NCBI GenBank assembly: GCA_015680685.1
Contig: MNCI01002976.1
Coordinates: 7,223-71,222 of the forward strand
Direction of reading: 5' to 3'
DNA from: Gnetum montanum
Lineage: Eukaryota; Plantae; Gnetophyta
Length of the DNA: 64,000 nucleotides
The notes under the pieces were generated by a model. It worked only from the letters and a program-made list of their open reading frames with translations. It had not been told where the DNA came from and did not search any database. The translations under genes and the position numbers were made by a program. Of this stretch, positions 18,330-64,000 are shown in pieces (positions within the stretch are counted from its first letter, which is position 1; the number at the start of each line of letters is the position of its first letter).

Positions 18330-21300
18330 CAAAAACATTGAGATTAAAACTTTATCAACATTTTCTTAATTCTATGATATAGATGATGAAGATCCATATA
18401 ATCATATACCAGCATTTGAAACATTGATAGTTACATGTGGTAACAATATTACAAAATGTACTAAAAGGAGTGTCTTTTATCTAACATTTACAGATCGTTC
18501 ATTATCGTAGTATAGATGGTTAAAACAAAATTCTATTCAGTCTTGGAATGGTTTTAAGAATGAGTTTTAAATTGATTTTTATTTTTAGCAAAAATGCACC
18601 AATATAAGAAATAACTTGTAGGCTTTTTACATCAAGAAAATGAAACTTAGGAATAGGCTTGGGAGTATTTAAAAATGTAAACGCAAGAAATCCTGGTCAT
18701 GATTTTTCATAATATTAAATGTTAGGGTTTTTTTTAATGGTTTATACCTATCACATGGTAGAGTATCTATTTTGCTTATGGTGTTACAATTATAATAATG
18801 ACAACAAAAGTAGCTTTTGGTGCATTAGATAAAATAGTGGATCAGAGAAAAAGTTGGCCTATGGATAAAAAAGCCAATATGTTAGAACATAAAGTGATAA
18901 TAGGTTTGGAAAAATAAATTGTGAAGATTAATAATAAATTATCATCTTGATCTATGTCATCTAATGCTAGTTTGTAGGGCCAATCTTTCCAATGTCCACA
19001 ACAAGCATCGTTAGTTTGTATGAATGAGGGAATTCATAACACTAACCAACCATAGGCTAGAGGTATGGATTTTCCTTATTCTTGTGTAATTTGTAGGGAG
19101 ATTAATCACACTACTCATGATTATCCCATTTTACCATTTATTAAAGAACAAACTAATGTTGTAGGTAGTCAAGGTGGATAGGGGAGAAGTGTAACTTTAC
19201 AAAGTAGGATTTGGAATCCCAAACATGTCCAAAATTACCAATCATGTCCTCCAGTTTGGCTTAATTATCCAAATGACCATAATAATTTCAACTATTCTTG
19301 GATACCTAATCAAAATCATGAATTTCATTAGCAAATGCTACAACAAAATGAAAACTTACAACATAATTTGCAAAATCAAAATGATCATATAATTAAGCAT
19401 ATTTAAGCCTTACAATCTAAGGACACATTACCAACACAAATTGAAAGAAATTCCAAGTATCAAGGAAGATAAGTATTACATATGGTTTTGTCATCCAACA
19501 ATGACCAATGTAATGTAGTGACTAGAAGTAGAAGAGTTATTGATCTTCAAACTCCTTTTCATAGGGCTATTGAGAATAAAGAACTAGAGGAGGAATTTGA
19601 ATCTTTACAAAAGGAACTTCCTATGAAAGAAGTGATTGATCCAAAGATTCTTTCAGAGGAAATCATTAATTCATCTTCTCTACTAGCATCTTTTCTTGAT
19701 AGATAAAAATCAAATGAGATTGATGATAAGAAAATTGAGAACCTTTTTAAAGTTGTCACCCTACATTTTATTATTAATAGTTATTGAAGAAAACTCCTAA
19801 TATGCTAAATACCTTAAGGAGCTTTGTTCTATGAAAAATAAAATTTAAATACCTAAGCATGTTAGCCTTGCTAAAAATATCACAAATATTTTAAATGTTA
19901 GGATGTCTAAAAAGGTAATAGATCCTAGTAGTCCTACGATTGCATGCATGATTCATAATAGAAAATTTCATCATGCATTAGTATATCTAGGGGCTAATGT
20001 AAATATTATGCCATTTCAGATTTATCAGTCATTTGGTTATGATCATATTAGACCTACCAATTTTACCATTTCCTTGGTTTATGGGTCTACTAACTATCTG
20101 AAACATATTATTGAGGATATATTGGTTTAGGTAGATAAAGCTTTGCACCCTAATGATTTCATTGTGGTGGATTATTATACATCTTGATTAAATAATGTTT
20201 ATCCTTTGATTTTAGGTAGACTTATGTTGGTAACTATGGATGTAGTTATTTAAGTAAAAACTACATTGATGACTTTAACATTTTCCAATATGAAATTTTT
20301 AATCAATTTATATAACTTTTATTTTTTAGGGTCTACCAAAATTTTCTTTTTACTCACAATGTGGCCTAACAATATGACCTCCACAAACTCCATCATGGTT
20401 GAAAGTAAGAATTTGATTTGGTAATTCCTAATAAGAAGGGATCTAAAAATGTAGTGCAGATCATTTGTACATATTAGAGCATAATGTAGATTTGGAGACA
20501 TCTTATACCTTTAATGATGTATTTCTAGATGAATGACCATTTGCTTGCTTGGCTAGGACTATTATTCCTAAGGTTTGAAACCCTTGGTATGTAGATATTG
20601 CTAATTATTTAGCTGTATGCAAACTACCAAAATCTTGGACTCAAGGATAGAAATGGATCTTCGTCATTAAGGCACAATGGTTCACTTTGGAAGATCCATT
20701 CATGTATAAGGTTTGCAAAGATTAGAACATTCAACAATGTTTACCAAAACAAGAATAACAAGAGGTAATTACTTTCAACCATAATGGAGTATGTGAAGGT
20801 CACTTTTCAAGTAAGAAAATTTCATACAAAGTCCTTCATATTGGTTTTTATTGGTCTAATTTATTTCAAAATACTTATGCATATTGTAAAAGATGTGATT
20901 AATGCTAGTCCATGGGAGGACTGACAAGATAATAAGACATGTTATTATTACCTATCTTGGTGAAGTGTGAACCCTTCAATTATTGGAGCATTGATATCAT
21001 GGGTTCTTTTCCTTAAAGAAACTCTTGTAAGTATATTTTAGTTTCCATTGATTATGTTACCAAGAATTTTGGCAAGAGCAACTAGGCATGATGATGTAAA
21101 ATTGATAGTTAGTTTCTTGAGAGAAGACTTAATTCCATGCTTTTGACATCCAAAAATCCTAATTAGTGATTAAGGAACAAATTTTGTTAATGATATAATG
21201 GGGAAATTGCTAAACAAAATGGGAAATACACATCATATTGCTATTGCATATTACCCTTAATCAAATGATGTAGTTAAAATTATGAATAAGGAAATTTAAA

Positions 21301-23200
21301 AACATTCCATAGAAAGTTATATGAAAGAATAGAAAATATTGGTATACTTGATTACTTGATGCATTGTGAGCTATTAATACATCATATCAGTTGGCTCTCA
21401 GATTTAATTCATATGAAATAGTATTTAGTAAGTAATGTCTTATTATTTCTTTGATATAAAATAAATCCTTTCAAATGCAACGTCAATTGGATATGAACTT
21501 GGACTTGTGTATTTCTATCCATATCTATGCTCTAAACTATTTAGCTAAAGATTTTATGCATGCTCTAGATAGGCAATGTTTGTATAAGAAATAGATGAAG
21601 ATGTGACATGATCAAATGATTATGCAAAAGTTATTTTCAGAAGGTGATTTAATGTTACTATTTAATATAAGGATTAATAATTTTTCTATGAAATTAGTAT
21701 TAACATGGAAGATTCCTTTTACGGTTATTAAGGTATTAGGTAATGACACTATTGAAATTTCTAGGCCTGGTAGTTGTGAGTCTCTACATGTGAATGGTCA
21801 ATGGCTTGAAGATTATTTTGGATAACAACCCTACTTTGATATTGAGATGATTACCTTAACTGATACTTCTTCTTAGTAAGTTGAATTTAATTTAATCATG
21901 AACTAGTTTCCAATAGATTCTTATTAGATTGTCTAAGCTTTATGCTTCTTATTATGATAGGTTAATAGCTTTATTATTATGTGCTTTATCATCTATATGT
22001 TTTGGGTGACAGGTATTATGAGCCATACATTATATTTTTATTAATACTTATGCATGCTAATGATTATTGTTGTTATCAAGTCTTTGGTAGTATCTATGGT
22101 AACATATCTTTCATGGTATTTAGCCTTCAATGACTTAAATTCATAAAGGTATTTAGCCTTTCATGGGTTTTTGGGAATTTTTGTCTTTGAAATTTTTTAA
22201 AATTTTTTACTATAAATAGAGCAAAGGGTGGATGATGGGGTTTTGTCCCATGGAGAGAGTTTGTTAGTTTTTCAATTTGAAAATGATAAATTCTTTTTTT
22301 TATATACTAGGCATGTTGTTGGCTCAATATGTTATTTCATGAAAAATGTGAGGCTCTAGGCCTTCCTTAATTGAGGACTTGGAATAAGAGACATCATGAG
22401 ATATCAAGCATGAACCATGGGGATACTCATGGGGAATGACTTTCATAAGGATTGAACCTACACTAGGAGCAAAGTTTCCATTATTTATGAATTATGTTCT
22501 TATGTTAGTATAATAAGCAATCATAAGCTATTGCAGGTGTACATATTAGAGAATGCCTTTTAATAAGCATCTTGTCCCATTGCAACTATGGAACTACACA
22601 ATGAGAAAAGTTTTCATTGTTTAAAGATCATGTTTTTATGGCAGTGCAACAATCCCATAATTACTAAAAATATTATTCTTAGAAAAAAGAGAAAAAAAAA
22701 ATTAGTTGCTAATAAAGTATTTTGGATGCTAAGTGTTCTCTTTTTCATGGACATAGAATAAGTTTATTATGTTGATGCATAAAGAGTCTCCATTACCAAT
22801 AGCTACTTTTAGTAGGGATGACTATGTACTTTTAAGAGATGTAGTGCATAAGACATGGATAATTTGGTAAATAATGATTCATGAATGTTTGATCATGATA
22901 GTGAGGTGTATTTATATTATTCATTTAGAAGTAAATTTACTTAAGTTGTCACCAAATTTCTTCATATTTACCAAGCACAAACACTTTAGTTATTCTTCTA
23001 TCATAATTTTTCTTCATTTTTCTTGCTTTATTTTCAGTGGACTATATTTTATATTTTCGTTTCCTCAATATTTATTGAAGAATTATCTTGGACTAAGAAG
23101 TTCAAGTAGTGTATGACTCATATTCACTTGGACTCTCACTACGAGCCTGATTATTAGCCATAATTACCTTGGAGTTCACTCTATTGATGTTTATCATCTA
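18330..23200 (+). mobile_element. Degenerate Athila-type element: gag, protease, integrase; RT/RNase H deleted; both ends approximate
   Basis: gag EDPYNH (~18390), protease ALVYLGANVNIMP (19903-20130) and LILGR, integrase PWYVDIANYL (~20585), GHFSSK...GFYW, WSIDIMG, and GPY/F-type tail ORF 21616-21825 (VNGQWLEDY). Confidence 0.8.
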
Positions 23201-24425
23201 CAATGGAGTGTCGCTCCTAGTTCATTGCAATTTGGAATTTATGATTTTTGATTTTGATTAGTGAAAACTACTATGACTCATAGTTCATTCCATTATAATG
23301 TTAATTTCTCAGATTTTAAAATAGTATGATGAGATGTGACTTGTAGTTGATTGCAACTCCAAATTTTTTTAAATTTTTAGTTGTTATGTTGCAATGGGTT
23401 GTGACTCATAGTTGGTCACATCCTGATTGAAAATAGAAAAATAAAAGTAGTTCCTCAAAACAAAAAAAAACATTTTGCATCATAAAGCACTATAAGACGC
23501 ATCCAAGTGCTGAAGGGAGATTTGATCATATACATAGAAAGTAGATCTAACCTTGAATCCTTCTTTCCTTTGTAAAATGCCTAAGGTAGGCCTTAAATCT
23601 CTTTTTCTCAAGCATTTTTCTTCTAATATTTCTAGTTGCACATTATTGTGAGAAAATATGGAGCATTAGCATTACTTCTGAAAATGAATTTTGGGTTTCA
23701 GGTATCCTTCTTAATATTCTAGTACTTGTTTCTTGTAGTGTTTCAAGAAAATTTGTAATTGTGAATGTTGTATTAAACTATATTTTTGTGTTTTCTTTTA
23801 GAATTTTATGGTTCTTGCTAAATATAGAGTTAGAAACTAAGACAAGGATATCACTTGTAGCAAGATAATGCTAGGGTTTGTTCATGAGAAATTAGAATTA
23901 AAATTTTATTACTAGAAGGGACATTATATTTTACTATAGCTCTCCTATTTGTAAATATTTAAATATCAAGTCCAATTTGGGCTTTCTCTAAGTTGGAGCT
24001 AGGAAAACAATAATTTCAATTTAAGACTTACTTAATAGTATGAGATAGTATTAAGATAGTCAATGTGTATTCTTGTGAACTACATTTATGCTACCATAGT
24101 AAATTCTCTGTTAGGTGTGAAACTAATTTCATATTATATAGTTCCAAACCCTTTTCTACTTGAATAGCTATTTTCCACCTTTTCACTGGGCATGTACGTT
24201 GAGGACAATGTAGACCTAGTTCAGGCCACCAACATTGTTGAGATTTGGGAATTACTAGTGTTGAATTTTACAGTTGCTTTTTGTACTTTTTATAATTTAT
24301 TTGCATTATATTATTTTCAATTTTTCATTCTATTCATATTTTCTTACATCCATTATATTATCATTGTATGTCTACTGATGTTCCCTATAACAAAAAACTT
24401 CTTGTGCATCCTAGTGCAAGAGGGG

Positions 24426-25430
24426 ATGTCCTCAAGAACAATCTTTAGTAGCTCCAAACCTAATAACATGAAGATGTGCTTAGAAGGAAGAGTAGGAATG
24501 CATTCATAGCTAGTGAAAGGAGATTTTGGAGTATGAGGAATAAGAGATGAAGTTGCCTACGATGCCATTGAGGACACCTAGGAACCTCAAGTTCCTCATG
24601 GAACTAGTGAATTCACCAGTTTCAACTTCTTTCATAGTGCATAACCGAGAGTTTGTCTTGATAGGAGGTAAGACATTCTATTAGTAGGAGGCTCATCATT
24701 TCTACTTAATACTAGTAAGAACATCACTGAAGTCATGGAATTCTTAGGCTTTTCAAAGATCTTATGACATTAGCGAGGTCCTCATTATTGAGGTCCTTGA
24801 GATGCAGGTGGGACCCAATAGATAATACTTTATGATGTCAATGTTAGAGAGAAAGACTTAATTAACTAAGATCTTCCTTGATGTGATGATGGATGATTCA
24901 TGATAATTCTACAAGAACCATCCTCTTGAAAGGAGGATTCTTGCAAGGTTAGTGATGAACATTTTCAATAGCTTTCATTTTATACATGACATGTCTTTTG
25001 GCAAGTTGGTGACTAGTAACTTGGAAGATCCTTATACCCTAAATTATCCATTTAGTATTTTGTATAGGATGGAGTTGGGAATTTGAGACTCCAATGAGGT
25101 CCCATTTCCATCAATGATCTTAACATTTTATCATCATTTTTGGTTTCGGCCACCTGCCCTACCCCTCAAGGAGATCATGGCATGGAACAAGGATTAGTTT
25201 CTGAATCTAGGATGTGCTTTCTGCAGTCAATGGCTAGCCATGAAATAGTATGAGGAGGTTTAATGGATTCCTAATACATAAATTCTTGGAGATGAGGGTA
25301 GGGATGTTTGGAAGGCCCACTATGCTAACTTAAAATAGCCACAATACTAGCAACAGGGTATGATAGGTTGTGTTTTGTAGTCACCTCCATGATCTAGGTA
25401 TATCCCAACTTCAATTGACAAAACTCCTTA
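24426..25430 (+). pseudogene. Degenerate TE accessory ORF (PMD/env-like?), parent element unclear
   Basis: Stop-riddled, coding-like stretch richer in GC than its flanks, after a T-rich intron-like tract. Contains LRCRWDPIDNT, reminiscent of the plant mobile domain RW.PET.TF motif. Confidence 0.3.
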
Positions 25431-25483
25431 GTGACTTTTAGCTGGAACTTGCAATGTTGATGAAAAGGAGATAAATTTTGTGT

Positions 25484-25580
25484 AACATTGGTTGCAAAGG
25501 AGGGTAAGGTTTGTGCAATGTTGGTTGCCAAAGGGGGTAAGGTTCTATAACATTGGTTTCCAAGGAGGGTAAGGTTATGA
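25484..25580. repeat. ~32-bp tandem repeat x3
   Basis: AACATTGGTTGCAAAGGAGGGTAAGGTT variants at ~25484, 25517 and 25549. Confidence 0.85.
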
Positions 25581-28500
25581 ACTTGACTTTTTTATGTTGA
25601 AAAATTACTCTGAGAGTCTCCAATGCTCAATCGATTACTAGTTTGCCAAAAACGTATTGCAAAATGTCAAAAAAAATTTTGATACTCAAGATTTTAAAGG
25701 TTGTCCAACCCAAAGGACCTATTCAATGTGTTCAAAATTTTTATTTATAGACCATAGGATTGCTAGTTTTTGGCTATAAATTTCTACCATGATTGCTGAC
25801 ATATTGATATAATTTGTAGATGTAGTAGGGCCTTTAATCTCTAGTATATTTTTCAATTTATGGTAATTTTTAATACCTCCAAGGCCATCAAAAACATGCT
25901 AGATACCATAACTAGTAAACAAACTTTTCCAACTATGCTAGCTTTACCCATCCATGCTAGCTTCATGGGATCCATGCTGAAATGTTGGAGAAAATTTTGG
26001 CCTTATGAAGAAATCAAACCTCCAACTACTCCAACACTGGCTTTGTGAACCAATGCCAAGGTTATGGAAGCTATGCTGGTAATTACTATGAAAATGAAAA
26101 CCCAAACTCCCCAACATTGGATGCAGGTGGTTCTAGTGTCGTTGCAGTTATGAACCATGTAAAACCCATGAAAATGCCAAATTTTCCAATCCTTAAGGAC
26201 TTTTTATCCTTCCCAAGCCTAAATATAGACATAACATAACTTTTTTCACTTGGAAAGTGAGGCTATATCAACTTATGAGGCATGTTTTAGCACAAAAATT
26301 TCAAGTATGTGAGATTGCATCTTATGGATTACAAACCCCACATTATTACAATGAAAATCTAGCCTCAAGTGTAGGGTTGAAGGTTATAATGCTAAAAAGG
26401 TTGCAATATGTTTTTTATTGATGGTGTTTCATTGGTTCCTATTTGTTAATGTTTAGATGATTGAGCCAAGAGACATCAACAAAGAATGCAAAACACCATT
26501 GTAGGTCCATCACCAACATTTCCTCTCTGTGCTTGATTCTATAGTGTTGAACCATGCCAAAGAGTGCTTATGATGATGGGATAAGTGTTATGATGACATG
26601 ATATAGGTTAAAGGCTATATTTGGGTACAAAAAAATGGTCATAGGGTTAACAATGAGTTCAAATGTTGACATCGTGGCTGCAGTTATGTTGGTGACATTT
26701 TGGATAATCGATGGAGTCTTCACACTTTATCCTTTGAAGTGTTGATCACTTGGAAATGTTTTTGAGGAACTAACACCTCACTCTAAGGTTTCTTTGGCTA
26801 TTAGGCTCCTCCCTTTGCTTTTTTGTAGTCATTTTTTTATCTTTTGGTCTTTGTTATCCTTTCAACTTCTTGGAAATTTGGTTCCCCATTTTTTTCTTTC
26901 GTTTTTTGGATGAAAACTCTATTAGGTTTCATTACCAAGGCTAGGTTTGATTTTGATTTTTTCACTAAATGAGATGTGTTACATTCATTGGAATTAATGA
27001 TGTAGCATGACAAAGGAAATGTGACATGGCCATAATGCATGAGTGTCAAACATAGGTCATCATTAATGTTTAGGGTAAGGAAGGTTATGATCAAGCTATG
27101 GGATTGCACTCAAGGAGTGGTAATGACAATGATATGAAACAAGCACTCTTGGTGTGATAGGACAAGCTAACCAAGTCTTATGCATCAAGATCACATGGTA
27201 ACTTGCTACTGCGACAAGTTTTACCTTTGCAATGACATCCAAGCTTCATCTTGTAAGTAAAACTTCAAGAGAACAAGAAAACAAAACAAAGAAAAAATGT
27301 TGTTATAGTACAATGCATATGTCCACATAAGACAACTAGCAGACCAAGTTACAATAGGTCACCATTGTTACACCATAGGAAAATCTATGCAATGTATGTC
27401 AAATTTACAATACTTGTAGTTCATTTATTGTGCCAAATAGAGATATTGAAAGAGAGCATGTAGGAAAGCTTATTGTAGACCACTATAGTCATCAACGTTG
27501 GTCATTCGTTGCAACCTATCAACAAAGATAAATAACACTACAAGCAAACATGTGAGTGTTGGATGTAATCAAGGCTATGTGATGGCTTTATTATTATACT
27601 ACAAGGGTCTAATGATTCCTTGAATAGGTTTAAGTTTTGGCAAGGAACTTGGTTTTAGGTGCTTTCTCCTCACCATCATGGTCTATATGGGAACTTCAAC
27701 TAAGGAATCCTTTGTGATGTTTTTGGCTTTAAGATCAATGGTCATCATGCTACTTAAGGGTATTATGGCTATTTAATAGAATGTTTTTAGGGCTTGAGGT
27801 TTGGGTGTTTTAAGGTCAACTTGGTCTAACAATATCATGAAAGGAACCTATTTAGGCTTTAAAGATAGTTGAATTCCTTCCCCATCCTCCTAGATCATTC
27901 TTGCACAACAACATAAGTCCATCAAGTGATGCTTGTATAATAAAATTATTAAATAATGTAAAAACAATAAAAAATATTTTAATAATAAACTAAATGTGAT
28001 TCAAAATAAATTAAATCAATGTCAAAAAAGATGAAAACATGGTCAACAAAGGTCTTAAGAGGTTGATTGGGGCAAATAGGGTGAAATAAAGGCCAAATGA
28101 TGTAGAATCAGGTCAAATAAGGGTCAAATGATGACTAAAACCACATAAAATGGTATCAAAAAATATAAATAAGGTCTTATCAATATTAAATGACATCAAA
28201 TGATGTTTAATGAAGTCAATCAAGGTTCACATGATGCCAAATGATGGAAAAGAGTGCTAAAATAGGGAAGAATTATGTAAACAGTGATCATATTTTGTCA
28301 GTTTTAGGTCTTAGTGAGCTCTGATATCACTAGTTTTAGGCCTTGGTAGACTACAATGTTGCTAGTTTTAGGCCATAGTGCACCATGATATCATTAGTTT
28401 TAAGCCTTGGTGAGCCATGATGTTGCCAATTTTAGGCATTCGTAGGTTGTGGTAAGGGCCTATTTCACTGGGCAGGGTCAAAGCAAGGTAATGCTAACAT

Positions 28501-31260: not shown

Positions 31261-32667
31261 CAAAGTTATAAATCCTAGTATTTTATAATTTTTGGTTTTT
31301 TTTGGAAGGCTAAATTGGTTAGAACACATGGTTATGATACAATAATTACTCATGAAAAATGTAAATTAACTAGACAAGCCAACAGTAAACTAAGGCATAA
31401 TGGCTAAAAATAGGTTGTAAAAGTATTGCTAGTTTTAGGTTTTGGAAAGACACTAGTTTAAGGCCTTGGAAGGTTATGTTTTGCTATTTTTAGGCCTTAG
31501 TGGGCCATAGTTTTCCTAGTTTTAGGCCATGAAGGATCATGTTCTTTACATTGTTTAGCAAGTATGGGATGCTCTTGAAAGAGCATATAAGGCTAGAGCT
31601 AATATTAAAACATGATATAATTCCAAAAATGTGATCAAATGATCCTTAATAAGAGAGGGGATAAGACATTTACTATGAACTTATTGCTTGATCTTTGATA
31701 GATCAATGAGTCCGTTTGGCATGATCTTGTGCTCACCATATCTCTTGTTCAACATGGTAAGTTGCATGTATTTTCATTGAACACCCCATGTTGTAGAGTT
31801 GATATAGCTAGCATTATTATTATCTTTGTTGTTGGTGGTCCCAATCTAAGTATCGGGAGTTTCCTCTTGAAACTACACCTATAAACCTTGGTTATTATTA
31901 ATATAGTTAACTAAAGGTACCAACACATTTTCTCCATGGATCATAATTTCCCCTTCCTCATATGGAAAATGAATCTCTAGGTGTATAGGAGATGAGACCA
32001 TGTAGATCTTAGCCAACTAGGTTCTTCCTAGAATTAGGTTGAAGTTAGGTCTCTTCAACTCCTAGGAAGTATGTGAATGTAGGAAATTTCTCGCTAGTTA
32101 TGAAATCTAAGAAGATAGAACCTTGCACTAGTACTAACTCATTAAATGACTAGAGTGGTGAGGTTGTGGTTGCTGGGATGTTCTCAATTAAGGCTAGTTT
32201 GTACACAATGGAAAATGATACTACATTAGTTGCCATCCCATCATTCATATGGACACATTTAATCTTGTACATGCCAACACATATGATAATTAGGAGAGGG
32301 GCAAATAAAAAATTCCTATTTCAAGTGTCAATATTCACCTCATTTTCATAAAAGTCAAGTATTGGTTGATGCCCATTTTCCTTAAGTAAAGCTTGTTCAA
32401 TGATAGAGTAGATAGACTTTCTATTGGGAGGCATGTCTCTTCTCATAGGGATAGAAGTCAATGCTTGAGCTATTGCATCTCTATGAGTAGGAGAAGTTAT
32501 AACTAGGTTGTATAGGCTTGGTGATGTGTTTTTTTTTGTTTAAGGGATTGTTTCACTTGTTCCCTTGTTGTAAGAAATTTTCCTTTAGCATGTGATATTT
32601 TAGCCTTAGTGGTCTTAACATCCTTCATCATTCCTACAATTTGTGGCTTAGGTTTTAATGTGGTTTC

Positions 32668-35600
32668 TGTTGGCGACCATTTGGGACATGATTGCCAACG
32701 AGTGTCCTCGAACAGGATTTAGGTGCTTGCTAGTCTCTCGCAACACCAAGGCTCAGATACCTACAAATAGACTTAGTAGTTAATGTGAGTATGTGTGTGT
32801 GCTGTTGTGAAAAATGAAACAATTGGGTTGTGTGTGAAACTATAAATGACTTATCTTAAAGATATTCAGCTAACTTTGCAAAGTATTGTGAGTTGTTGAG
32901 AGTTCCTATTTTGTTCAATTGCCTAGTCTATGTGGTCTTTATAATACCTACTTGTAACAAATAAAGTTTTGCAAAAACATTTAAGCACAACTCTGCAAGT
33001 CTACTTCTAATCTTTCCCAGAGAAAGAGATAGTTCCACAAGAAAATTATAAATAGAGCGAGATTCAATGGAAATAGAAATAAGAGAAAAAGAAAGCAGAT
33101 TTGTGTAAAGATCTCAAATGTTTAAACAAGGTAAAATGATACGAGTAAAAAATTCACAATAAAGCTATCCCAAATTCAATAACTACAAATTTTTTAAACT
33201 TCCAAGGCTCAAATAAACAATTTCTTCAGGACAATCCTACTATGCTACCCAAAAAATTGCTACATAAACCATCATGTACCAAACTCTATTTTGGCTAGAT
33301 AATGGATGTCAACAATTGCATTCAACAAAACCTTCAAACGACTTGACAATTTATGATTGAAATACCATGGAGATTCACTTTAAAGATAAAAGAAGCTATT
33401 CTAGTCTTATCAAAATACCAAAGATTTTTTGAACCCTCCTGACTATTTAATTGTTCAATGAATTGACTACATGCAGAGGCTCTCTTACAACAATCTCAAT
33501 AGCGGTTCTTTTACATTGCCCAATAATAAAATTCACTACTAAAATGCTCTTAAGACTTTCAAACACAAGCTCTTCTATGGCAAAATTTTAATAGAAATTT
33601 TCTATCATGCAACAAGAACAATAAGAGCAATCTAAAAATTCCAAAATTATTTGCCAAGCATGATACTATCTAAAACACTAGCTAAACAAGTTAAAAAAAA
33701 TAAAAAATAAACATAACTCATAGGAATATGACAAAGAGGCTAAAATGTTGTCTTTAATAAGTTATCTTACAAGCAATCTTTCACAATGTCTTCTTTACAA
33801 ATGCTCTTCTCCCTTCTCTTTCACCAAGACCCAGAGTGAAACCCCCTTTCCTTTAACCCTTGAAGCCTTTTTATAGGGTCTCATAGGTAGTTAGATATTA
33901 CAAAATATCTTGGGTAACTTTTCTCCCAAGTAAGGAAGTTATAACTTGCCCAACAAGTTAGGAAGTTATAACTTATACACGAAGTTAGGAGAAAACCATG
34001 CTAACATTGGCACGTGTCTTTACAAAATTTACAAATATTTCTTTCATAATAAGTCATAACCTATATAATAATTTTAGAAAATAAAGCCAAGATCTCCATA
34101 CAATAAGCACTCCATACAATTGTCATTTTATTTCTGTTTAAGATTTCAATTGTTAAATATCATTACCCACCGTGTACAAATCCCTAGTAATTTTCATGAA
34201 TAGGTGGTACTAAGAAAGTAATTCAGCATCCATCTTAGTGTAGATGTTGGTGGAGGCGGCTGCATGATCTTTCAAATCAAGAAAGCCGATCCTTGCAAGT
34301 CAAGCATACCATCTGATGCTTGTATAACTAAATCATCTGCATTTGCACTTGATGCATGCTTTATATCCACGTAAAATTTGTTGTTGGTTTCCTTGGAAAA
34401 GTGACTCTCACTGGGTAAAGAAATTTGAATACGGTGGTGACCACTTGGCACCATTACAGGAGGTGCTTCAATCAGCAACACATCCTTTAACTTTTTGAAG
34501 CCTCATTTTCCTGCTATCATCATCTCCCAGTAATTGATTCTTCCTTCCTTGTCTTGTCATTCCAAACACGCATTTTCTTCTTCCCATAGGCTGTTGTTGT
34601 TGTTTCTTTCCCATCAAAGTATCCATATACCACATGCCTGGTCATCACTTTGCTACACCAGATCCACAACCTTCTTCATCAAACATGCAATGCCACCATT
34701 ATTATCTAACGCCGCCCGTGCATCACTCGTAACAGCTAACACTAGCTCTGTGCATAATCCTTTGGCAGCTACCATGTTACGCATCATTGCATTCTTCCCC
34801 ATTATTTTGGTGGTTATGTTACCCATTTCTCTATCCCTCTTTTCTTGAATTTCTTTACTTGAATGGTGACTAGTATTTCCATTACATCAAAGAGGTCATG
34901 CGTGCATTATTTTAGGCAGTGTAGATAATAGCAAAATAAGTAGTTTTAGCTACATATGAAATCTAGAATAATGCCGTCATTTGATTCAGATGATGCCATC
35001 TCCATTTTCACCAATGGCTCCATCGAAACAGTAGGCGTTGACGGTGGCGTTGGCTCTGGCTTGATCTAGCCGAAGGAGGTCACATGTTGATGCTACCCTC
35101 ATCTTCTTGACATGGTAGAAGTGGGATATTTGGAACATTCTACGTAGTATTCTATCTTTTTGTTGTTGGAATTTCATTCATTAAGCAATCTTTTATCTCC
35201 GCAACATCAAGGGCTTGACCACGGCGTGCTCTAACTTTGGGAGGCGCTAATGGCGCAGCACCAGCTGTTAGAGGAGCCTGGTAACGAAACTAATTTCAGG
35301 TTCTCTATTCAAACATTTTTCAGCTGAACTTTTAATTACATGCGACACTGAAATCCAGCGCAGTATTTGAGATACATAAATATTTTGCACTTTTGGAGCT
35401 TTGGTAGATTTATTAAATCTCTACAGCTGCACCAGAAGCAGCTATGGTGTCCGTGATGTTTCACGTGAGTGTTTCACTATGGCCGTGGGACAGAGTTCAG
35501 CTGCCGCATTTCGTGAAGTTTGGTTGCAATTGTAGGTTGTGGTGATTGTAGTGCATGACCACCATTTCGACACCAAATAATGTCGTGAGCAAGAACACGT

Positions 35601-36249
35601 TGAAGTTGCTCGCATTCGATGAGGACTTGGATTTTGACTTTACGAGCGATGGTGTCAAGGATGAAGATGATGGTGATGACAACGAGGATGACCACATGGA
35701 AGCACTGGGTGAGCTTCATAGATAAGGGTAGGGATTTCCTCATCATGGGAGATTGCAAGCTCGACGAGCATGTGTAGAGGACCACCGGGAAACAGAACGG
35801 CGACAACATTGTAGAGGGCCATGGCCACAAGTAGAATCCATGTGGTCCACTGCAGTAGCGTGGTGAACCAGTAGGCCACTAGCATACCTAGTAACACCAC
35901 CACAGCCCCACCCATGTATGCTAGAACCACGAAGGCTACCAAGTTTATGTACCAACGCAGGAACCTTGTGCAGCGGAAATAGAAGAGACATACCAGCATG
36001 AATGTTACCACTGTGACCAACAGCATGCACAATGAAACTAGGATCACAATTTTGATTATTTCTTCTCCCAGGTTATGCAGTATGCTCCCTCTCTACCTCT
36101 CTTATTCTTCCTCTAACATGATGCTTTTGGCATAAAAACTTAGACAGTGCTTAGCATCAGCATTTTCTGATCTATTTTTTTTTTCTAAAACCGTTGCTCA
36201 TATTTTATCATATCAACCTATTCCATGAAATGGCCAAAATGTGCCAACA
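32668..36249 (-). mobile_element. 3582-bp solo-LTR-like insertion carrying host gene-derived sequence
   Basis: Ends TGTTGGC...GCCAACA with a perfect 5-bp TSD GTTTC (32663-32667, 36250-36254). The gag of copy A rejoins across it. Minus-strand CCCTATAAAAAGG at ~33865-33878, preceded by two AAGTTATAACTT palindromes. Confidence 0.85.
34900..36119 (-). pseudogene. Presenilin-derived pseudogene with internal deletions; 3' end approximate
   Basis: From ATG 36119 (two early in-frame stops): GSILHNLGEEIIKIVILVSLCMLLV / TVVTFMLVCLFYFRCTRFLRWY...MGGAV / VVLLGMLVAYWFTTLLQWTTWILLVAMALYNVVAVLFPGGPLHMLVELAISHDEEIPTLIYEAHP. This matches plant presenilin (WFTKLPEWTTW, ALYDLVAVLAPGGPL, LVELASSRDEELPAL.YEARP). 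A frameshift into a Ser-rich loop follows. Confidence 0.92.
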
Positions 36250-38889
36250 GTTTCCTTGGATCCCATATCTATGAATGTAGTTGATTTTGGTGTGGACCTT
36301 GATTGGTTAAGTTGTCTTAAAGCCTTTCATTATTGGTTACCTTCAATGGACTCCATTGTTGGTTTGGGAACTGGTTATTTTCATTGGCATTTTGATGATG
36401 ATTTCTTGCTAACCTCTAAGTTAAGGGTTACTGTAGGTGGGCTTTAAACACACATTGTTATGGTTTTACTTATTAAAGATGGAGGAACCTGGATAATGAA
36501 TGGTTCCTTAGGCTTTGAAGGATTAGTATCTCGTGGTCTGGGCTATGAAGTTGATGCCACTAAAAGGGGGACACGTATGATGAAAGGTATCTTAGGGGCT
36601 AAGGGAGGTGATATCCTAATGATGAAGGGCTATCTAGGCTTTGTGTTTTAAGACTACAGTGGTACTCTAATGATAAAAGGATCCCTAAGAGGATTAGATT
36701 GTTTTGTTTCTATCAATAAGGCTACAGTATGGGAGTTGTTGTTGGTGCTTGGAGAGCAAGGCTCATTGAACATCAACCCTCCATGATCTATCATCTTCTC
36801 AAGGTCATCCTTTAATGTTAGGAAAAAATCAATGTCATGACTAGCCATTTGATGATAATGGCAAATACCTATCTAGTCTAAAGTACTTCAATAACTTTGG
36901 ATCATCTTTGATAGTTATCGTTGGATCTCTATCTATGTCACAAAGATGATCATGCCTCCTACAAGCTTCCTAAGATAGTTTCTTATGTTGTATATAGTTG
37001 TCTTTAAGCCACTATTGTAAAAGATTAGAGGGCTTCATAAGCAACCTAGTATACTTTGACCTATCCTTCCACCCAAAGTTTGATCTTGATTGATTTGGAT
37101 AGGAAGTGAATAGTTACGATGAGTCAGGGGATGTGTTGCATGGTTGTGATCCCCATCTCTCTACTTTTTTTAACTCCTTGGATACTAAGGCCATGGTTGT
37201 ATGTTCTTTCATAGCTTTTAAAATACCACAAAATTTTGCATATTATAATCAATCTTCATCATGTAGCTTTCACCCCATGAAACCTAAGGTAAAATTTCAT
37301 TGTAAATGTGAAAATTATAACCCAAAATGGGAAATTTCAAATAGTTTATACTTTTGGGGCCGAAAAATGCCTCATAAGTGGTCCAAGCCTCATTCCCTAA
37401 GTGAGAAAAGGTTACCTATTATCTATATTTTGTCTTGGGAGGATCAAAAAATCCTTTTGGAATGCCAAAAAAGGAAATTTGATGGGTTTCATGGGGGGTA
37501 TGCATTTTTCTACGTTGGAACCATCTGTACGGGGATAGATCTCACCTACCTCCAATGTGGAAGAGAGGAGGGTTTAAAAAATTTCTCCCCTTCAATGTGG
37601 ACACCAAATTCATAACTCAAAAACTTTTCCCCAACTTGGAAAATTTCCCCTTTAGCTTGGAAAGTTTTCCCCCAATGCAAAATTTTTTCCCAAGCCTTGA
37701 AACTTTTTCCCCTACCTTAGAAAGATTTTTTCCCAATGTGAAAAATTCAATTTCCTAGTGTGGAAGCCACAAGAAGAAAAATTCATTAATTCATGCACTT
37801 CAATGTTGACCAAACACTTCAAGAAACATGGTGGATATCTTAGCATGGAAGATTCATCTCCAACGTGGAAGGTGTGCCCTAGTTAGTATTTACAGTAAAT
37901 GAAATGACCATGGGGGAGGCACTTACTATGTATAGTAACCCCTCAAATTTGGACACCCATCTCACCTAAATTTGTAGCAAATTTATAGCCATTTTCAAAA
38001 AAAATTGTAGTTTTTTCATAGCCAATTTGTAGCCAAATCATGGTAATTTGTAGCCTCATTCATGGCCTAAAGACCCTATGAAAGCCAACCTCCAACACCA
38101 TTGAGAGATTCCATGTTCCAAAATTTTTTAGCAAGTTAAGCATTTTTTGTTCAAGTAATTTTGAAATAATTTTCATTCACATAATTCAATACTTGGAGAA
38201 TTTTCAAGCACTCAAGAAGTCTTACAAATTCCCATACTTGAATTCTCTTGAACCATAATGTGGAAGTAGTGAGGCCTTGAGATCTGGTACATTTTTAGTG
38301 TTAATACTGCACTTCTAGGATTCCAAACCCAGCATGGAGAAACTTGGCATCCAAATATTCCACCTTTCTCACTCTCCATTAATGACCCAATTGGTAGATC
38401 CAAGGTTATGGCAGCAAAGGAAGGTTTGATAACATCAAGAGTGGCTTAGCATCTAGATCATGGAGTAGATCACCTTAGCTTCTATAGGCTTTGAACTCTT
38501 GCATAAGTGAACTCCATTTTTGCTCATCCAAGAACCATTTGTACACATTTCTCTAAATTATTATTTATTCTTTTCTCAATAAAAGTTTTGAGTTTTTTGT
38601 TCAAAAATAAATTTATTATATGTGCATTATTCAAATCTATTCATATTTCCACATTTTGCATCTCCTAAGTCCCTAGTTGATCTGCCAAACTAGCTAGGGC
38701 ACTTTAAATCCCATTTTTATCATGAAGGCCTTGGGGATGGGGAACTACTTGCATCGAGGATTCTTAGCTTTTCATTCTAGCAATTAAGGTTTTTGGTCAC
38801 AATAGTTTTTCTTGGCACTAGAAGACAGGTCTTTGGCAAAATTATATAACCAAATCTATTCTTTTCATAGTCGTTTACAAGCCTTTCAT

Positions 38890-39880
38890 TTATTTTTTGC
38901 AACCAAAACCTTTGAGAAATCAATGCTGGTCTTTCCCCCTTTGTGACAAAAACTGTAGCATGGAAGTTGTAGGTGGTTAGGTTTTGGCTTTTCACAAAAA
39001 TATTTAGTGAATTTTATAGCCCAAAGCCAATGTTGATATCTCTTTCCCCCTATTGTTTTTACTACCAAAACAATTTTCTCTAGTTTCTAAAGTGAGTGGT
39101 TCAACTCATATATGAGTTGGCTCCCCCTCCCACCCATCCCCAACCCCCAAAACTTTTCCAAGCTAAGAAAATTAGCAACTACCTAAAATCAATTTTAGTG
39201 AAAAACTACTAATTTTTCACATTGGCTGTTAGCCTTTCTCCCCATCAATGTTGAGGTAGGAGGTGTGAGATTTCCATCATCTCACCTCCCTTCTTACCCC
39301 CCTCTACCATACCCAGCATGAAAGTAGTTGGGAGGCCAGCATTGGTTAAGTTTGAAACCAATTTTTTAACCAAATCTACTTTTTTTTGTAAGTTGAAAGC
39401 CATTTTCTAGCCAAAACTCTGAAGAAATCCAATGCTACCTTTACCCCCCTTGTGGTAGAAACCTTAGCATAGAAGCTATAGGTGGTTTGGGTATTGGAAT
39501 TTCACAACATCTATTATGAATTCCTAGAACAAATCCAATATGGAGGCCTTGATAAAAATTTAAATTTTTTTGCCATAATCTTTGTTACTAAACCAACATT
39601 GGTTTCCATACCAACCAAGCCTATTGTTCCCTTCTTTTTGGTGAAAGTTGTAAACCTACAAAAACCATCTTTGGAAATTTCCAAACTTTCATTTTTGGTC
39701 TTCAAACATTCCCCCCTCTCTCCAATGTTAGAATAAGAAGGTGTGAGATTTCCATTATCTCACCTCCCTTCTTTCTCCCTTTGTCATACCTATCACAGAG
39801 GCACTTGGGAAGCCAACTTAGGTGAGCTTTGAAGCCAATGTTGCCAATATTCTATTTCTAGTAAAGGGATAAACCCCCCT
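38890..39880. repeat. ~480-510-bp diverged direct duplication upstream of gag B
   Basis: 38900-38995 resembles 39410-39505, and 39236-39360 resembles 39715-39840. Confidence 0.75.
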
Positions 39881-40777
39881 TAAGTATATCAATTTTTTGT
39901 CATTTTCATTTTCTCTAAGAGTTTTTGAATTTCATTGACTAGAATTTACTCTTATTTTAACATTTATAGCAGATTCTTTTAAGCAATTCTCAGGATTATA
40001 GCCATGTCTTTCTAAAAATCCATCAAATTTCCCTTCACCTTCACTAGTAAAGATCCTAACCAATAGGTGATGAGGGTTTATGATCCCAAAGACCCTACAA
40101 TCATTGAGTGTAGGTGATCTTTGAGAGTCAATGGGGACAATCCTAATTTTGCAGCCATAAATGAAGATCATTATGACTTCATTTGTGCCAAAGTATAGGC
40201 AAGCATGCTAATTCTAAAAATTGAAGTTGAGGTTAAAAGGGAGTTTAAGCTCATACACAAAGGTGAGAAAGACTACGTTCCTTTCCTATATGAAGAAATT
40301 TCCCTTAACGATTTCTATTCTAGCATCCTAGCCCAATTGATTACCACAAAAGAGAAGGATGCCTAGCATATCATTCGGGAACAACAGGAAGAAGAGGATG
40401 AATTTAGGATAGAGTCTAAGCCTGAAAACACCCTTGGAGGGCTATTCCAACAAACATACCCCAACATTACAAAACCTTCTCCTAATGCCTTTATTTTCTC
40501 CATGTGCATGATGCCACCATCTTCCACTCATCTACATCCTACTATGGTAGATCCCATGCTATTTGTAGCTACACATCACACTTAGTCAATGCCACAAACA
40601 ACAAGCTATAATGCATCACTACCATTTACAACACAACCATGATATACAAAATCATCAATAGTGGCTTTTACCACCACAAATCCCCTAACTAATCACATGG
40701 GATCTACCATGATACCCCTAGCAACACAAGGGTCACACACCACATTTGTCCCATTTGTGCCTCAAGTACCAACACAA

Positions 40778-41079
40778 NNNNNNNNNNNNNNNNNNNNNNN
40801 NNNNNNNNNNNNNNNNNNNNNNNNNNNNNNNNNNNNNNNNNNNNNNNNNNNNNNNNNNNNNNNNNNNNNNNNNNNNNNNNNNNNNNNNNNNNNNNNNNNN
40901 NNNNNNNNNNNNNNNNNNNNNNNNNNNNNNNNNNNNNNNNNNNNNNNNNNNNNNNNNNNNNNNNNNNNNNNNNNNNNNNNNNNNNNNNNNNNNNNNNNNN
41001 NNNNNNNNNNNNNNNNNNNNNNNNNNNNNNNNNNNNNNNNNNNNNNNNNNNNNNNNNNNNNNNNNNNNNNNNNNNNNNN
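40778..41079. other. Assembly gap (302 N)
   Basis: Run of n within gag of copy B. Confidence 1.
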
Positions 41080-43930
41080 TGACACAACACTTGACCAACT
41101 CATGAAGGTCAAGAAAGGGCACTTAGAACCTATATAAAAATTCATTCAATGGTGGAATGGATTATTCAATGAAATACTAGAGCCCATAGCCAAAGCCCAC
41201 TTGTTAGCCATGTTCAAGGGAGTAGTTAATGACTTCATCAAGTCTAAACTCTACTACCTTAATCTATGGCCTTTAAGCTAAGCATTCTCACAAATAAAAA
41301 ATATAGAGGATGTTGCAAAGGCCAACCATGATTTAGGCTATATATCATATAAAAACCAACAAACTTGAAGAGACAATGAAAAGAGTGAACACAACAACAC
41401 TACCATAGCAACTATAACCAAAGAAGCCAAGGCCTCAAACCAAGGGCTAAAGTTCAACCCATCCAAGGTCTCCACCAATGACCATAATAACCAACTATCA
41501 ACTTCTAGGACTAATGCATTGACAAAAAATAAACCTAACTTCAAAAGGAAGGATAGGTTTAAATACACTACATTACCACTAAAATCATCCAAGTTGCTAG
41601 ACCAACTATTAAGAAGTGAATGTATGCAACATAAACAAATGACTAAAGCCACTCAAAAGAAACTCAAGTGACTATGCAAAATAGCCAAAGATCCTACTTG
41701 GGTAACAAAGGATGATCCTCATTTTTCTAAATACATCAAGATAGACTACTTCTATCATTATCATTGACTACCTGGTCATGATATAAACTTCTACCTTACT
41801 TTGAAGGATGACCTGCAAAGGATGATAGATAAGGGAAATTGGTCTTAGATGCTTCTAACCTAGTTCGACCACAAAACTACTTAATTCAAGTCTACAAAGA
41901 TCCTTTGAATGCTAATGATAGCTCCTATGTTATATTGGCATCCAACATCAATAACAACCAGAGACCTACAAGAGAATAGTTTGTGATCTAGGTATCCCTC
42001 TACAATGAAAGAGTTTCTTCAGCTTTTCATAGCTCAAGATCTCCCTTCATTATGAGAGTACCATCATGAATGCCTTTAAGGAAACCTTTTGTTATCAAGG
42101 TTTCCCAACCCAATACAACCTATATAGCTATAGTCCAACCAACTACACAATGACCTGCTATGGTGGCTAATGTGACTATCTCTTCTTTATAGCCAATAGC
42201 TAACAACCAAAAAAATGTTAGCCAACCAAAGGAAGAAGCATAAGAAAAGGCCTAACAACATGGGAGAGAAGTAGATAGAGGCATAAAAGGAAGTGGATCC
42301 ACTGAAGCCCACTCCCATTTTAGCTATACCTATTACCTTCTTTACCAGCAAGCCATAAGAGGACACTAAATTCCACAACCAAAACAACCAAAAAGAGCCA
42401 CAGTAGCCATAGCTTAAAGCCAAAGTTTGCATTTTGTGACACATTGAGGAAGTAAAGCAATAATCCCATAGCCAACAAAAAAAACATTTCACTATAATGG
42501 ACATAGTCAGGTAATCACTTAAGGCAAAAAAAACACAAGCTTAAGCTTATATAACCTAATCATGACTTCTACCACACATTGTGAGGCACTAGTCAAAATG
42601 TTGACCTCCATATTTATTAGTGAAGATATTCCCACTAATGAGGAAGCGATCCATGTAGTGATGATTCCTTCATTACTAGGAAAGGAGAAGTTAACACCAT
42701 TAACATTTTGCAATAGCAAAATTAATGTGAATCCCTAGAATGGTGAAATATGATCCCTTTATTTATAATGATATGCATCAGAAAATTTAAAATACATTTG
42801 GTGCATGTTATTGAGGGAGCTACAACCAATTTCATTCCTTTCACCATCATTGAATGCTTGAGCCTAACTGAACACATACAACCTACAACCACTACAGCTC
42901 TTAAGTCCTTCAATGGATCAAGATTTTTCCTCAAGGGGTCTATCTTCTTAGAGTTTGTAGCTAGAGAACAATTCCCTACAACTATAAATATTTGGTGGTG
43001 GAACAGACACCATGATTCAACCTGATCCTCGGATACCTTGGTTCACTTAATTATGAGCTATCTCCTTGCTCATCCATCAAGAAATTCACCTTCCTTATGA
43101 GGGAGGTGAAATCATCATTCATGGTGATAATGTAGCTCCCCTAGCTATCAACAATGTGGGCATAGAATAGGGGTCCAAGCTCCTAGCCATGAAGAGCAAA
43201 AATCCAAGACAACCAATGCTGACAATGACAAGAAATAAGATACATTATGGGATGAACTTCCTTTTAACATTGTAAGTGAAGAGGATTGCAAATACAATCT
43301 TGTGAAGATTATAAAGAATCTACACAAGTAAAGTTTACCTTAACCTTCCCATGCCTCTATGATTGAATGCCACGATAACCAAATAGCCTTTTTTTTTTGC
43401 AATTTATTATATCTTTGTTATGCACGTAGCCTATGTATGTAGCCATAAATTTATTTGCATTGATTTTTTACAACCTTTCTTTATTTTTACTTATATTTTA
43501 AATATTAAAAAAAACATCTCTTTTAGACATGTCCCACTAAGGCCTAAAATTGGCATAAGATGTTAAACTGGCAATGTAGCCATGATCAAATTGTATAACT
43601 TGTGCCCAAAAATGGCCTAAAACTAGCAAACATCCCTTTTGTCATCATATCTCTCATTTCTTAGCCTATTATTACATCAATTAGCCATAACCAAAAACAT
43701 AAACATAGCCATTTTTAAGGTTTATAATATTTACAATATTTACTGCTACTATAAATGCATATAGCCAAAAAATAAAATCAAATACTCAAATTTAAAATTA
43801 AAATGTTCATAACACATATAGCCATAACCACAATGTGTAGAAATGATGCCAATGAATAACCATCCATAACATAGTTTTGGCTAACCATAGCTATCAACAT
43901 AAAAATAAAAACAAACTAATCTAAAGGAGG

Positions 43931-53373: not shown

Positions 53374-56300
53374 TATCAAAGTATGAGTACTTGGGAGCAA
53401 ATCAATTTACCTTTGTGTCTACATGGACCTTACGATGATATTAAATGATGTATCGACTATGATTGCCTAGATCTCAAGCTTGAAAGTCTTGTAGACCACA
53501 TAGCCTCAATAGAGAAACCTCTATAATTGCTTGAAAACCTAGTCAAAACCCTTGACTTAGAATCAAGGACCATAACTAAGGGCTCTCTAGTTGAGGTTCC
53601 TATCACAACACATAGTGGTGAGGAGAAAATCCTTAAACTAATTTCCTCACTAGAGCCTCAATGTGCCCAAGATATCAATCTTACAAAATAACATTAAGGT
53701 ATTTGCTTGGTCATATGAAGACATTCTAGGCCTAGACCCATGTCTATTCTAGCACAATATCATATTGGACCCTAGCATTATACTAGTTAAGCAAAAAGTG
53801 CAAAATATTAGACTTGATTTGGCCTTGACAATTCATAATGAAATCTCAAAGCTCTACCAAACAGGTCTCAGTAGGGCTATTAATTATGTAGAATGGATGT
53901 TCAACATAGTGGTAGTACCTAAGAAAAATGGAACTATCGATATTTGCATTAATTTGTAAGACCTAAATAAAGAAACCATCAAGGATGACTTCCATTTGCT
54001 TAGTATTGATCAACTTATTAATACTACAACTGAACATGCCCTATTGTCCTTTATGGATGGATTCTTAGGATATAACCAAATTAGGATCAACTCAATGTAC
54101 CAGCTTAGCATTACCTTTATGATCCCAAGGGGTACTTTTTGTTATACCATGATGTCCATTGTCCTTAAGAATGCGAGAGCAACATACCAAGGAGCCATGA
54201 CCTATATCTTCAGTGATTACATGTTAGGTTTTCTTAATGGCTATGTAGATGACATAGTTGTAAAATATAAAATAGCCAATGATCATGCTAATGACCTAGA
54301 CCTTGTGCTTAAACAATGCCTCAAATATGATCTTAGGCCCAATCCTAAGAAGTGTGTCTTCTGTGTTAAGATTAATAAGATGCTTGGCTTTATAATCTTT
54401 GAAGTAGGGATACACATAGATCTTGATATGGTTAAGGCCATATCCAAATTGGAAACACCTACCAACCTTAAAGAGCTTTGGGGATTACAAGGTAGATTAA
54501 AATTTATTCATATGTTTATCGCTAAGCTTATAGATAAGTTACAGCCTATGCAACATTTACTCAAGAAAGGAGTTCACTATGAATGGGTGGCTCAATGCTA
54601 AGAAGCCTTTGAAAACCTTAAGTAAGAGTTGACACAATTGTCGACAGTCTATCATTCACAAGAGGGTAAAGCATTCTACATTTATCTCACCATCTCTAAT
54701 ATATTTTTTTCCTCTCTACTCTATTAGAAATGTGATGACAGGGTAGAAATGCTTGTATACTACATTAGTTATACATTAGTTTTCCACAAGACCCGATACA
54801 CTAAAGTGAAGAAGTATTATCTAGTGCTAGTCCTCTCTTTGAAGAAATGGAGATAATACCTATTCATAAGCCAAGTCATCATAATTTGCAAGGATAACAT
54901 ACTCAAAGCCATAATGACCAACATCTACAAAAGTAGCCATATAGCTCAATGGAAATCTATAACCACAAAGTTCAACCTCCATTATGTCTCTCAATCATCA
55001 ACAAAAGGTCAAGCTATAGCCATACAACTCATAGTTTCACCTATTGATGACCAAGTATCCATGGACCCTAACTTTCCTGATGAACACATTAACACACTTA
55101 GCCAAGTGCTCAAGCATTATGAGGTAGTCATGAACTTTGATGGGGCTTCAACCACCCATGGAGCTAGTGCTACTACCATCATAACATTTCCATCTAGTGA
55201 AATCCAACCCTTTGCCTATCATTTTGGGTTCCCATGTATAAAAACCATAGTGGGATATGAGGATTTTATTAGAGGGATCATGGTAGCTCATGACTTAGGA
55301 ATTAGATGCCTAGCCATCAAAGGCGATTCACAACTCATGGTTAGCCAAGTAACTAAAGTCTATGCATGCAAAGCTAAGCATTTACAACCTTACTGTGACC
55401 TAGGAAAGAAATTCTTATAATAATTCATAGACATTGATGTCCAAAACATAATTCAAAATAAAAATTCCATAACTAATGCAATTGCAAAACTAGCCCTTAG
55501 TGTGATACTAGATGTGTTTATCAAGTTTCCCACCTTAACTATGGACTGTGCTACTTTCATCATACAGAACACTGAGGATACCTTTGTGGCCATCATTCAT
55601 ACTACTCCTCCTAAGGAGTGGTATGATGATATCAAATTTTACCTTATACATGATGAATCCTCACAAGGCTTGACTACTTCTCAGAAGGATGCCATATGCA
55701 AGCAATCAAAGCATTATGTCATCATAGGTGATAACACATTATGTTAAAAATCCTACAGTGGCATACTTCTAAAGTGCTTAGGTAAAATCAAAGCTAGAAT
55801 AGTCCTAGAGGAGGTTCACAAGATCATTTTTGGAGGACATATAGGACCTAGAGCTATGATTCCTAATATTAGACGATAAGGCTACTATTGCTCCATATGG
55901 AAAATGACTGCTTGCAAAAGGTTAAGCAATGTGACATATGCCAATGATATAGCAACCTAATACATGTATCACTAATTAAGTTACATAAAACCTGGATAAC
56001 ATGGCCATTTCAATAATGGGGGTTGGATATCATTGGACCTATAATTCCTAAGTCTATTGTAAGGCATAGTTTCATCATTATTGCAACCAACTACTTTACT
56101 AAGTGGGTTTAGACTATTCCCATAAGGAAGACCATGTCTAAACAAGTTTGCAAGTTTATCCTAGACAACATTGTAGCTCATTTTGGCATACGCATAACCA
56201 TAGTTACAAATAATGGACCTCAATTCAGTAGCCAAGAAACCAAGCATTTTTATCACAACCTAGGCATTAAGCATTCATTCTCATCACCTTACTACCTACA

Positions 56301-63137: not shown

Positions 63138-64000
63138 TGATGAGTGCCGAGGAACCCCTACACTCAACCATATGAATGGGAGTGTTACACGCACAATCCG
63201 GTTGAACTCCGTAGATAGACTAGTTGTGGCACCTAGATAGTTAGCCTTACGTCGTAGTTTGTTGTCTTCCCACCTGGACTAGTATTATCTTTGTCATGTA
63301 TGGTTTAGTCGAGAGTGAGGTGTATGATGTGGTTTCTAATCTAATGCTACTCCTAAAGGCAATGGAAAATAATGTTAACTAAGCTAAGAGGGAAAGGGTG
63401 AGAGAGAGTCTAAACTAGCCCAAGTGTGATGAGCATCCATTCCTTGATTATCCGTACACATCTTGGACTTCATGCATGACTACTACTGGGACTACCAAGC
63501 ACAAATCCTAGATACGCTACTGGGTTACCAAGTAGTGACACTTAAATGCTCGTAATCAAGTCGTACTCATTCTGCATTTAATAGGATTTTAAGGGTGAGA
63601 GAGATTAACTAAGAAAGCAGTAAATAACAATTAAATAATTAAATAATTAAACTAAGTGAATGCTGCAATGATGAAGTAATCTTGATCTTTATTTTCGGTC
63701 ATGTGCATGTCCAAGTACGTCACACTCGAATAAGGATGCCGTACAATTACAATCACCACACTATGGGCATACGCTAGGAAATAATTCTAACTCTAAGAAG
63801 GAAAAACTACAAGAGTTTGGCTAAGGAACTAAAAACTAGATGCAAAACAAGGGAGAGCCACCTCTTATTTATAGGAATTGAGGCAGGCCATGATATCACA
63901 TACGTGATATCGTGGCTGATGTGATATCACAGCTGCGATATCACGTACACAATATCGCTGCTGATGTGATATTGTAGCTGTGATATCACATACGTGATAT
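63138..64000 (-). repeat. 5' LTR (truncated by window end)
   Basis: Direct repeat of 56927-57790. Confidence 0.93.

Follow-up and report, generated by a model that had tools for sequence, protein, structure and literature searches.

The capture of host gene fragments by long terminal repeat (LTR) retrotransposons is documented (PMC2774510, PMC13317346, bioRxiv 10.1101/777037). The element Bs1 carries three host genes, and 425 maize elements are known to contain gene fragments, none of them with fragments of more than one gene (PMC2774510, PMC13317346). In gymnosperms, a 2026 survey counted approximately 400,000 exon fragments captured by transposable elements (TEs) per genome, with 13.7% of the host TEs bearing two or more (PMC13477047). 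Studies in maize have addressed the cross-talk between captured fragments and their donor genes through small interfering RNAs (siRNAs; bioRxiv 10.1101/777037). Host-derived sequences may also lie inside the LTR itself, as in Cassandra (5S ribosomal RNA, rRNA), Helenus and Ajax (PMC10886601; bioRxiv 10.1101/2023.07.14.548913), while BARE-2 and Veju have chimeric LTRs that arose through abnormal template switching (PMC13317346). Here we describe a 3582-bp insert in a stretch of 64,000 nucleotides from Gnetum montanum (contig MNCI01002976.1; the whole stretch is called the window below, and all coordinates are positions in it). The insert is probably a solo LTR in which the U3 region is a mosaic of dead pieces of host messenger RNAs (mRNAs); its LTR identity, its orientation and the mechanism of capture are what we infer from the features presented below.

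As in Bs1 and other fragment-carrying LTR retrotransposons (PMC13317346, PMC2774510, PMC3726574), two or more host genes have left decayed pieces inside an LTR-type element, which probably acquired them via RNA. The pieces of Bs1, however, are located between its LTRs, whereas those of the Gnetum insert would lie inside the putative LTR itself, which is present as a solo copy only. The locus also differs from the elements of the maize survey, since it bears pieces of at least two genes. It resembles the gymnosperm TE captures in having an exon fragment inside a TE; that survey gives no position of the fragments within the element (PMC13477047). Host-gene-derived sequence within an LTR, doubled at each transposition, is a feature shared with Cassandra, Helenus and Ajax. 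In these three, however, the sequences are 5S rRNA or other small-RNA genes that act as promoters and are conserved family-wide, whereas the insert contains fragments of protein-coding sequence that are broken and show no sign of being used. The mechanism proposed below, in which foreign sequence enters an LTR as reverse transcriptase switches between co-packaged RNAs, is that of BARE-2 and Veju, but the donor was there another retrotransposon or unknown DNA and would here be host mRNAs. Pack-MULE and Pack-TYPE DNA transposons likewise hold a mosaic of several host gene fragments between fixed ends, but their long terminal inverted repeats (TIRs), their target-site duplications (TSDs) of 9 bp or 3 bp and their capture of genomic DNA were not encountered here.

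The capture of gene fragments at this locus is thus of a known kind, and the locus taken alone is a dead passenger, without visible effect or evidence of spread. Its only unusual aspect would be the placement inside U3, which depends on the inferred orientation and on the putative LTR identity. A search of the literature did not turn up any mosaics of protein-coding fragments within U3.

Insertion into a decayed retroelement

When read on the minus strand, both flanks of the insert show homology to another copy of one decayed retroelement, which lies on the plus strand of the window. Three pairs of blocks could be matched (37107-36780 with 41510-41836, 32584-32360 with 42478-42702, and 32299-32141 with 42756-42914). 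The two copies are arranged head to head (31900-32584 and 36780-37107 on the minus strand, 41510-43158 on the plus strand), approximately 5-10 kb apart and about 68% identical, and the plus-strand copy served as the empty-site reference. After excision of the insert and one TSD copy, global alignment to 41700-42780 gave 68% identity and ran straight through the junction. The junction itself, at about 42403, is contained in a block free of gaps, and identity amounts to 71% over the preceding 100 bp and to 67% over the following 100 bp. Moreover, the interval between the matched flank blocks is 613 bp once the insert is subtracted, compared to 642 bp in the paralog. Because the flanks are colinear with the paralog across the junction, the locus is a clean insertion with exactly these ends, and this colinearity is stronger evidence than the end signature.

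The insert starts with TGTTGGC (32668-32674) and ends with GCCAACA (36243-36249), the two being complementary at 7 of 7 positions, and GTTTC is found at both sides. The first-pass annotation, which had been made by a model from the letters and a list of open reading frames (ORFs), had reported a 3582-bp insert with TG..CA ends, a 7-bp TIR and a perfect GTTTC TSD, and all of these features were confirmed. It had also placed the insertion in the gag gene of an Ogre element. The insert does split a decayed retroelement, as the colinear paralog indicates, but a Pfam search recognized no gag or protease in the flanks of the insert and none in the paralog. Instead, a decayed motif resembling, by eye, a retroelement protease site is present in both flank and paralog, and the insertion lies approximately 350-500 bp upstream of it. 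The plus-strand copy also has a reverse transcriptase at 53996-54601. A Retrotrans_gag ORF is recognizable at 61992-62519, and its only relative in the window is found at 357-881, not at the insertion site. The target can therefore safely be described as a decayed retroelement, interrupted upstream of its protease region. The plus-strand copy includes an assembly gap, seen as a run of 302 N at 40778-41079.

The observed/expected ratio of CpG dinucleotides is 0.47 in the insert and 0.58 in its presenilin part, as opposed to 0.19 in the whole window, which has a guanine-cytosine (GC) content of 35%. This higher ratio would agree with an insertion of more recent date than the surrounding sequence, or with derivation from genes.

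Composition of the insert

The features recognized in the insert are listed in Table 1.

Table 1. Coordinates of the features of the Gnetum montanum insert in the 64-kb window
Feature	Coordinates	Strand	Remarks
GTTTC, left copy of the TSD	32663..32667		
Whole insert, putative solo LTR	32668..36249	minus	3582 bp; putative strand, following the sense of the gene pieces and the TATA box
AT-rich putative R-U5	32668..33840	minus	GC ~0.3; without gene similarity; ends in ...GCCAACA
TATAAAAA, putative core promoter (TATA box)	33868..33875	minus	
Tandem 27-nt repeat	33915..33995	minus	two clear copies and, by eye, a degenerate third; 40-120 bp upstream of the TATA box
SOQ1-like C-terminal-domain fragment (SUPPRESSOR OF QUENCHING 1)	34281..34484	minus	PDB 7djm/7djk
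Beta-propeller-like repeat (WD40 or NHL type), weak	34523..34675	minus	PDB E 0.015, below significance
Coding-like stretch	34890..35690	minus	GC 0.39-0.46; AATAAA on the minus strand at 35414-35409
Presenilin-derived fragment, start codon to end of transmembrane segment 6 (TM6)	35691..36119	minus	Pfam PF01080; PDB presenilin-1 and -2
A10 run	36175..36184	minus	~65 bp from the end, directly before the presenilin leader
TGTTGGC read on the minus strand, putative U3 5' end	36243..36249	minus	inverted repeat of 32668-32674
GTTTC, right copy of the TSD	36250..36254		

The best-defined piece is derived from presenilin. The minus-strand frame 36092-35658 matched the Pfam family Presenilin (PF01080) with an E value of 2.6e-27, over profile positions only up to about 223 of 408, and the structures of human presenilin-1 and -2 in the PDB with E values of 1e-8 to 7e-8. 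Among 1.84 billion representative proteins, the best match was a Welwitschia mirabilis transcript (P0005; 104 of 131 aligned residues identical), and identity to the nearest presenilin is 74-79% at the protein level. In a phylogenetic tree the fragment is placed among gymnosperm and fern presenilins and outside those of angiosperms, on a branch of 1.25 changes per site and with an odd composition. A legume origin was rejected, the fragment being nearest to gymnosperm presenilins; taken with the GC content and CpG ratio of the window, its place in the tree points to a gymnosperm host, and a legume framing of the Ogre assignment is doubtful. In the same tree, a 103-amino-acid presenilin-like prediction from a 3.8-kb ENA contig (P0004) groups with the presenilin of Cryptomeria; its TM6 motif is also damaged (IND for YD), and it could likewise be a presenilin pseudogene, from a conifer.

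The fragment starts with an ATG of its own (36119-36117), at a distance of 130 bp from the end of the insert, and encounters stops at codons 6 and 9. Two in-frame deletions of 52 and 45 amino acids have removed the TM1-TM2 loop region and TM4-TM5. In TM6, the catalytic YD is changed to YN, an Asn codon (AAT, 35810-35808) standing in place of Asp, and the homology stops at 'YEAHPV', near position 35691. The C-terminal halves of seven plant presenilins had no match in the insert, from which the loop, GLGD and PAL parts are absent; a whole presenilin gene was rejected on this ground. Of the features expected of a functional presenilin gene (peptidase A22A), similarity to PF01080 is present, but an intact frame with both catalytic motifs (YD in TM6, GLGD in TM7) and PAL is absent.

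It is highly improbable that the presenilin piece is functional, whether by being translated into a mini-protein or by giving rise to siRNA or antisense RNA that acts on the presenilin gene of the host. An open frame of 145 codons does survive, and both internal deletions are in frame, but in simulations of neutral decay, 13-30% of trials were still free of stops at a protein divergence of 20-25%. Survival of the frame is thus within neutral expectation (P(no stop) 0.13-0.30), and selection on it was rejected. The two stops within nine codons of the ATG, the loss of the catalytic Asp, the absence of the second catalytic half and the very long, compositionally odd branch all stand against a functional product. 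As regards siRNA, the protein identity given above leaves few perfect 21-24-mers. The gene fragments are non-functional passengers.

Presenilin homology accounts for only about 430 bp, or 12%, of the insert. Further along the minus strand, the piece 34484-34281 resembles the C-terminal domain of Arabidopsis SOQ1 (E 1.7e-4, domain independent E value 0.003), with the common string ISLP...HFSKE...KF.VD. It ends in a stop, which is followed by a tail resembling a 3' untranslated region with AATAAA at 34132-34127; a protein search with this SOQ1-like piece produced no candidate. The beta-propeller-like stretch directly upstream may be the NHL part of the same gene. Neither the coding-like stretch 35690-34890 nor the piece 34656-34886 had a relative in Pfam, the PDB or the protein atlas. 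With both the presenilin and the SOQ1-like pieces identified, the cargo is, judging from these similarities, a mosaic of at least two host genes and not a presenilin gene.

No poly(A) tail or direct repeat was found bounding the gene block, and the A10 run lies on its 5' side, which is the wrong side for the poly(A) tail of the block. A retrocopy of the long interspersed nuclear element (LINE) type, that is, a LINE-mediated processed pseudogene, was rejected, the gene piece having neither a 3' poly(A) tail nor a TSD of 7-20 bp around it. In this part of the insert, the first-pass annotation had been right about a minus-strand presenilin-like frame beginning about 130 bp inside the end and about the lack of a poly(A) tail or second TSD around the gene piece; its reading of about 1.9 kb of gene-like sequence as a presenilin-derived gene was not borne out, most of that length being other sequence.

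Nature and origin of the insert

Downstream of the gene pieces, the insert has a promoter-like part. The LTR-type TATA box that had been predicted near 33870 is present as TATAAAAA (33875-33868, minus strand), and the tandem repeats precede it. Such an arrangement, with repeats directly before the TATA box, is common for U3 in plant LTRs. The minus strand carries the presenilin piece as well as the SOQ1-like one, and both are thus in sense relative to the putative promoter, the orientation of the element being itself putative. Such a sense orientation of both pieces is what RNA-level capture by template switching, a mechanism reviewed in PMC13317346, would give.

Because of its TG..CA ends, 5-bp TSD, clean insertion and promoter-like part, the insert is best read as a solo LTR. 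The first-pass annotation had described a solo LTR with a presenilin gene, in which a presenilin copy had been built into the LTR. The solo LTR is retained as the best reading, but in place of a gene there is a broken N-terminal fragment. Likewise, host-derived sequence does lie inside the boundaries of the insert with no TSD or poly(A) tail of its own, but presenilin is one of at least two host-gene pieces in it.

The locus could have arisen as follows. An LTR retrotransposon would have been placed by its integrase upstream of the protease region of the older retroelement, and later cut to one LTR through recombination between its two LTRs. The 5' part on the minus strand, the putative U3, would be a patchwork of decayed, sense-oriented host sequences, in the order of the first ~230 presenilin codons minus two deletions, the coding-like stretch and the SOQ1-like 3' end, to be followed by the tandem repeats, the TATA box and the AT-rich R-U5. 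The likeliest origin of this patchwork would be a switch of reverse transcriptase from the element RNA to co-packaged host mRNAs while U3 was being copied, and such a switch would put the host pieces into both LTRs of the daughter element.

Several observations weigh against this reading. The end signature, counted as a TG-starting 7-mer whose reverse complement lies at a distance of 1-8 kb, the two being bordered on the outside by a 5-bp direct repeat, occurs 8 times in the window, compared to 2.8 ± 1.6 times in block shuffles. It is not rare, and since it is common in shuffled sequence it is by itself weak proof of an insertion. The putative R-U5, at about 1.17 kb, is long and lacks AATAAA on the minus strand. 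The orientation of the element is weakly founded, because AT-rich DNA also offers TATA-like sites on the plus strand, and in the AT-rich part such rival sites are found at 32841 and 33047. The window contains no further copy of the insert or its termini, and no full-length element, primer binding site or polypurine tract was seen; the LTR identity is taken from the ends. Finally, the mRNA origin of the fragments is presumptive.

Self-comparison of the insert revealed no terminal direct repeats, and a small complete element, either a terminal-repeat retrotransposon in miniature (TRIM) or a large retrotransposon derivative (LARD), was rejected on this ground. The insert might also be no LTR but another non-autonomous mobile element, or an aberrant complementary DNA inserted by integrase, which by chance has TG..CA ends and a 5-bp TSD. 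In favor of this view, LTR identity is read from ends whose signature is common by chance, and searches of the window and of the metagenome and viral collections produced no relative: scans of metagenomes with the termini gave 0 matches for one and 5 for the other, all of them bare 20-mer chance matches, and scans of viral contigs gave none. The clean insertion with its 5-bp TSD, however, fits an LTR-type integrase, and LINE-type retroposition would need a poly(A) tail and a longer TSD, neither of which is present. Plant DNA-transposon superfamilies have TSDs of 2, 3, 8 or 9-11 bp and longer TIRs, and Helitrons have no TSD; the 5-bp TSD and short TIR of the insert are unlike either. An origin other than an LTR is therefore considered quite improbable.

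It is somewhat less improbable, although still unlikely, that the locus is a one-off, in which an ordinary solo LTR of approximately 1.5-1.7 kb later received the gene-like block of about 2 kb, as filler DNA during double-strand break repair or by another insertion, so that its family would lack presenilin. A word-indexed search of 5.8 billion predicted proteins, including gene calls on plant contigs from Logan, found no near-identical mini-presenilin, which counts weakly against a many-copy family. This result, the lack of a second copy within the window and the odd A10 run at the 5' border of the block would all agree with a single event. However, the block is bordered neither by direct repeats nor by a poly(A) tail, and all identified pieces have the orientation of the promoter-like part.

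Other features of the window and significance of the locus

Besides the insert, seven other pairs in the window have the TG/7-bp TIR/5-bp TSD signature (90-5318, 4911-6323, 19832-24327, 20992-22406, 24548-27267, 37262-40573 and 38427-42097). Most of them should be due to chance, with about 3 expected per window, but given the excess of 8 over 2.8, at least one of them may be a real LTR-type insertion. Direct repeats that are 91% identical and 6.2 kb apart (56927-57226 and 63138-63437) enclose minus-strand ORFs, including the Retrotrans_gag ORF mentioned above, and could represent the paired LTRs of a small element. The repeat occurs a third time, inverted, at 2900-3523, beside the gag relative at 357-881, which is 54% identical. 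The window also contains an intronless and intact ORF of 482 amino acids on the plus strand (7709-9157) with TAXi_N, TAXi_C and Asp domains (E 2e-51, 2e-32 and 2e-22, respectively), which is probably a real host aspartic-protease gene among the repeats.

If the insert is indeed an LTR, pieces of host genes can be lodged in that part of a retrotransposon which every transposition duplicates and which persists as a solo LTR. Published gene-capture surveys give no separate counts for this position, and the locus is valuable as one more data point on LTRs that bear gene fragments. It is also conceivable, though doubtful, that one or more LTR families of this gymnosperm genome have a U3 cassette that is routinely rebuilt from host mRNA pieces, a 'Pack-LTR' of which this locus would be the member with a presenilin/SOQ1 cargo. 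In such families, a mosaic of gene fragments would be copied twice per transposition and left behind in every solo LTR.

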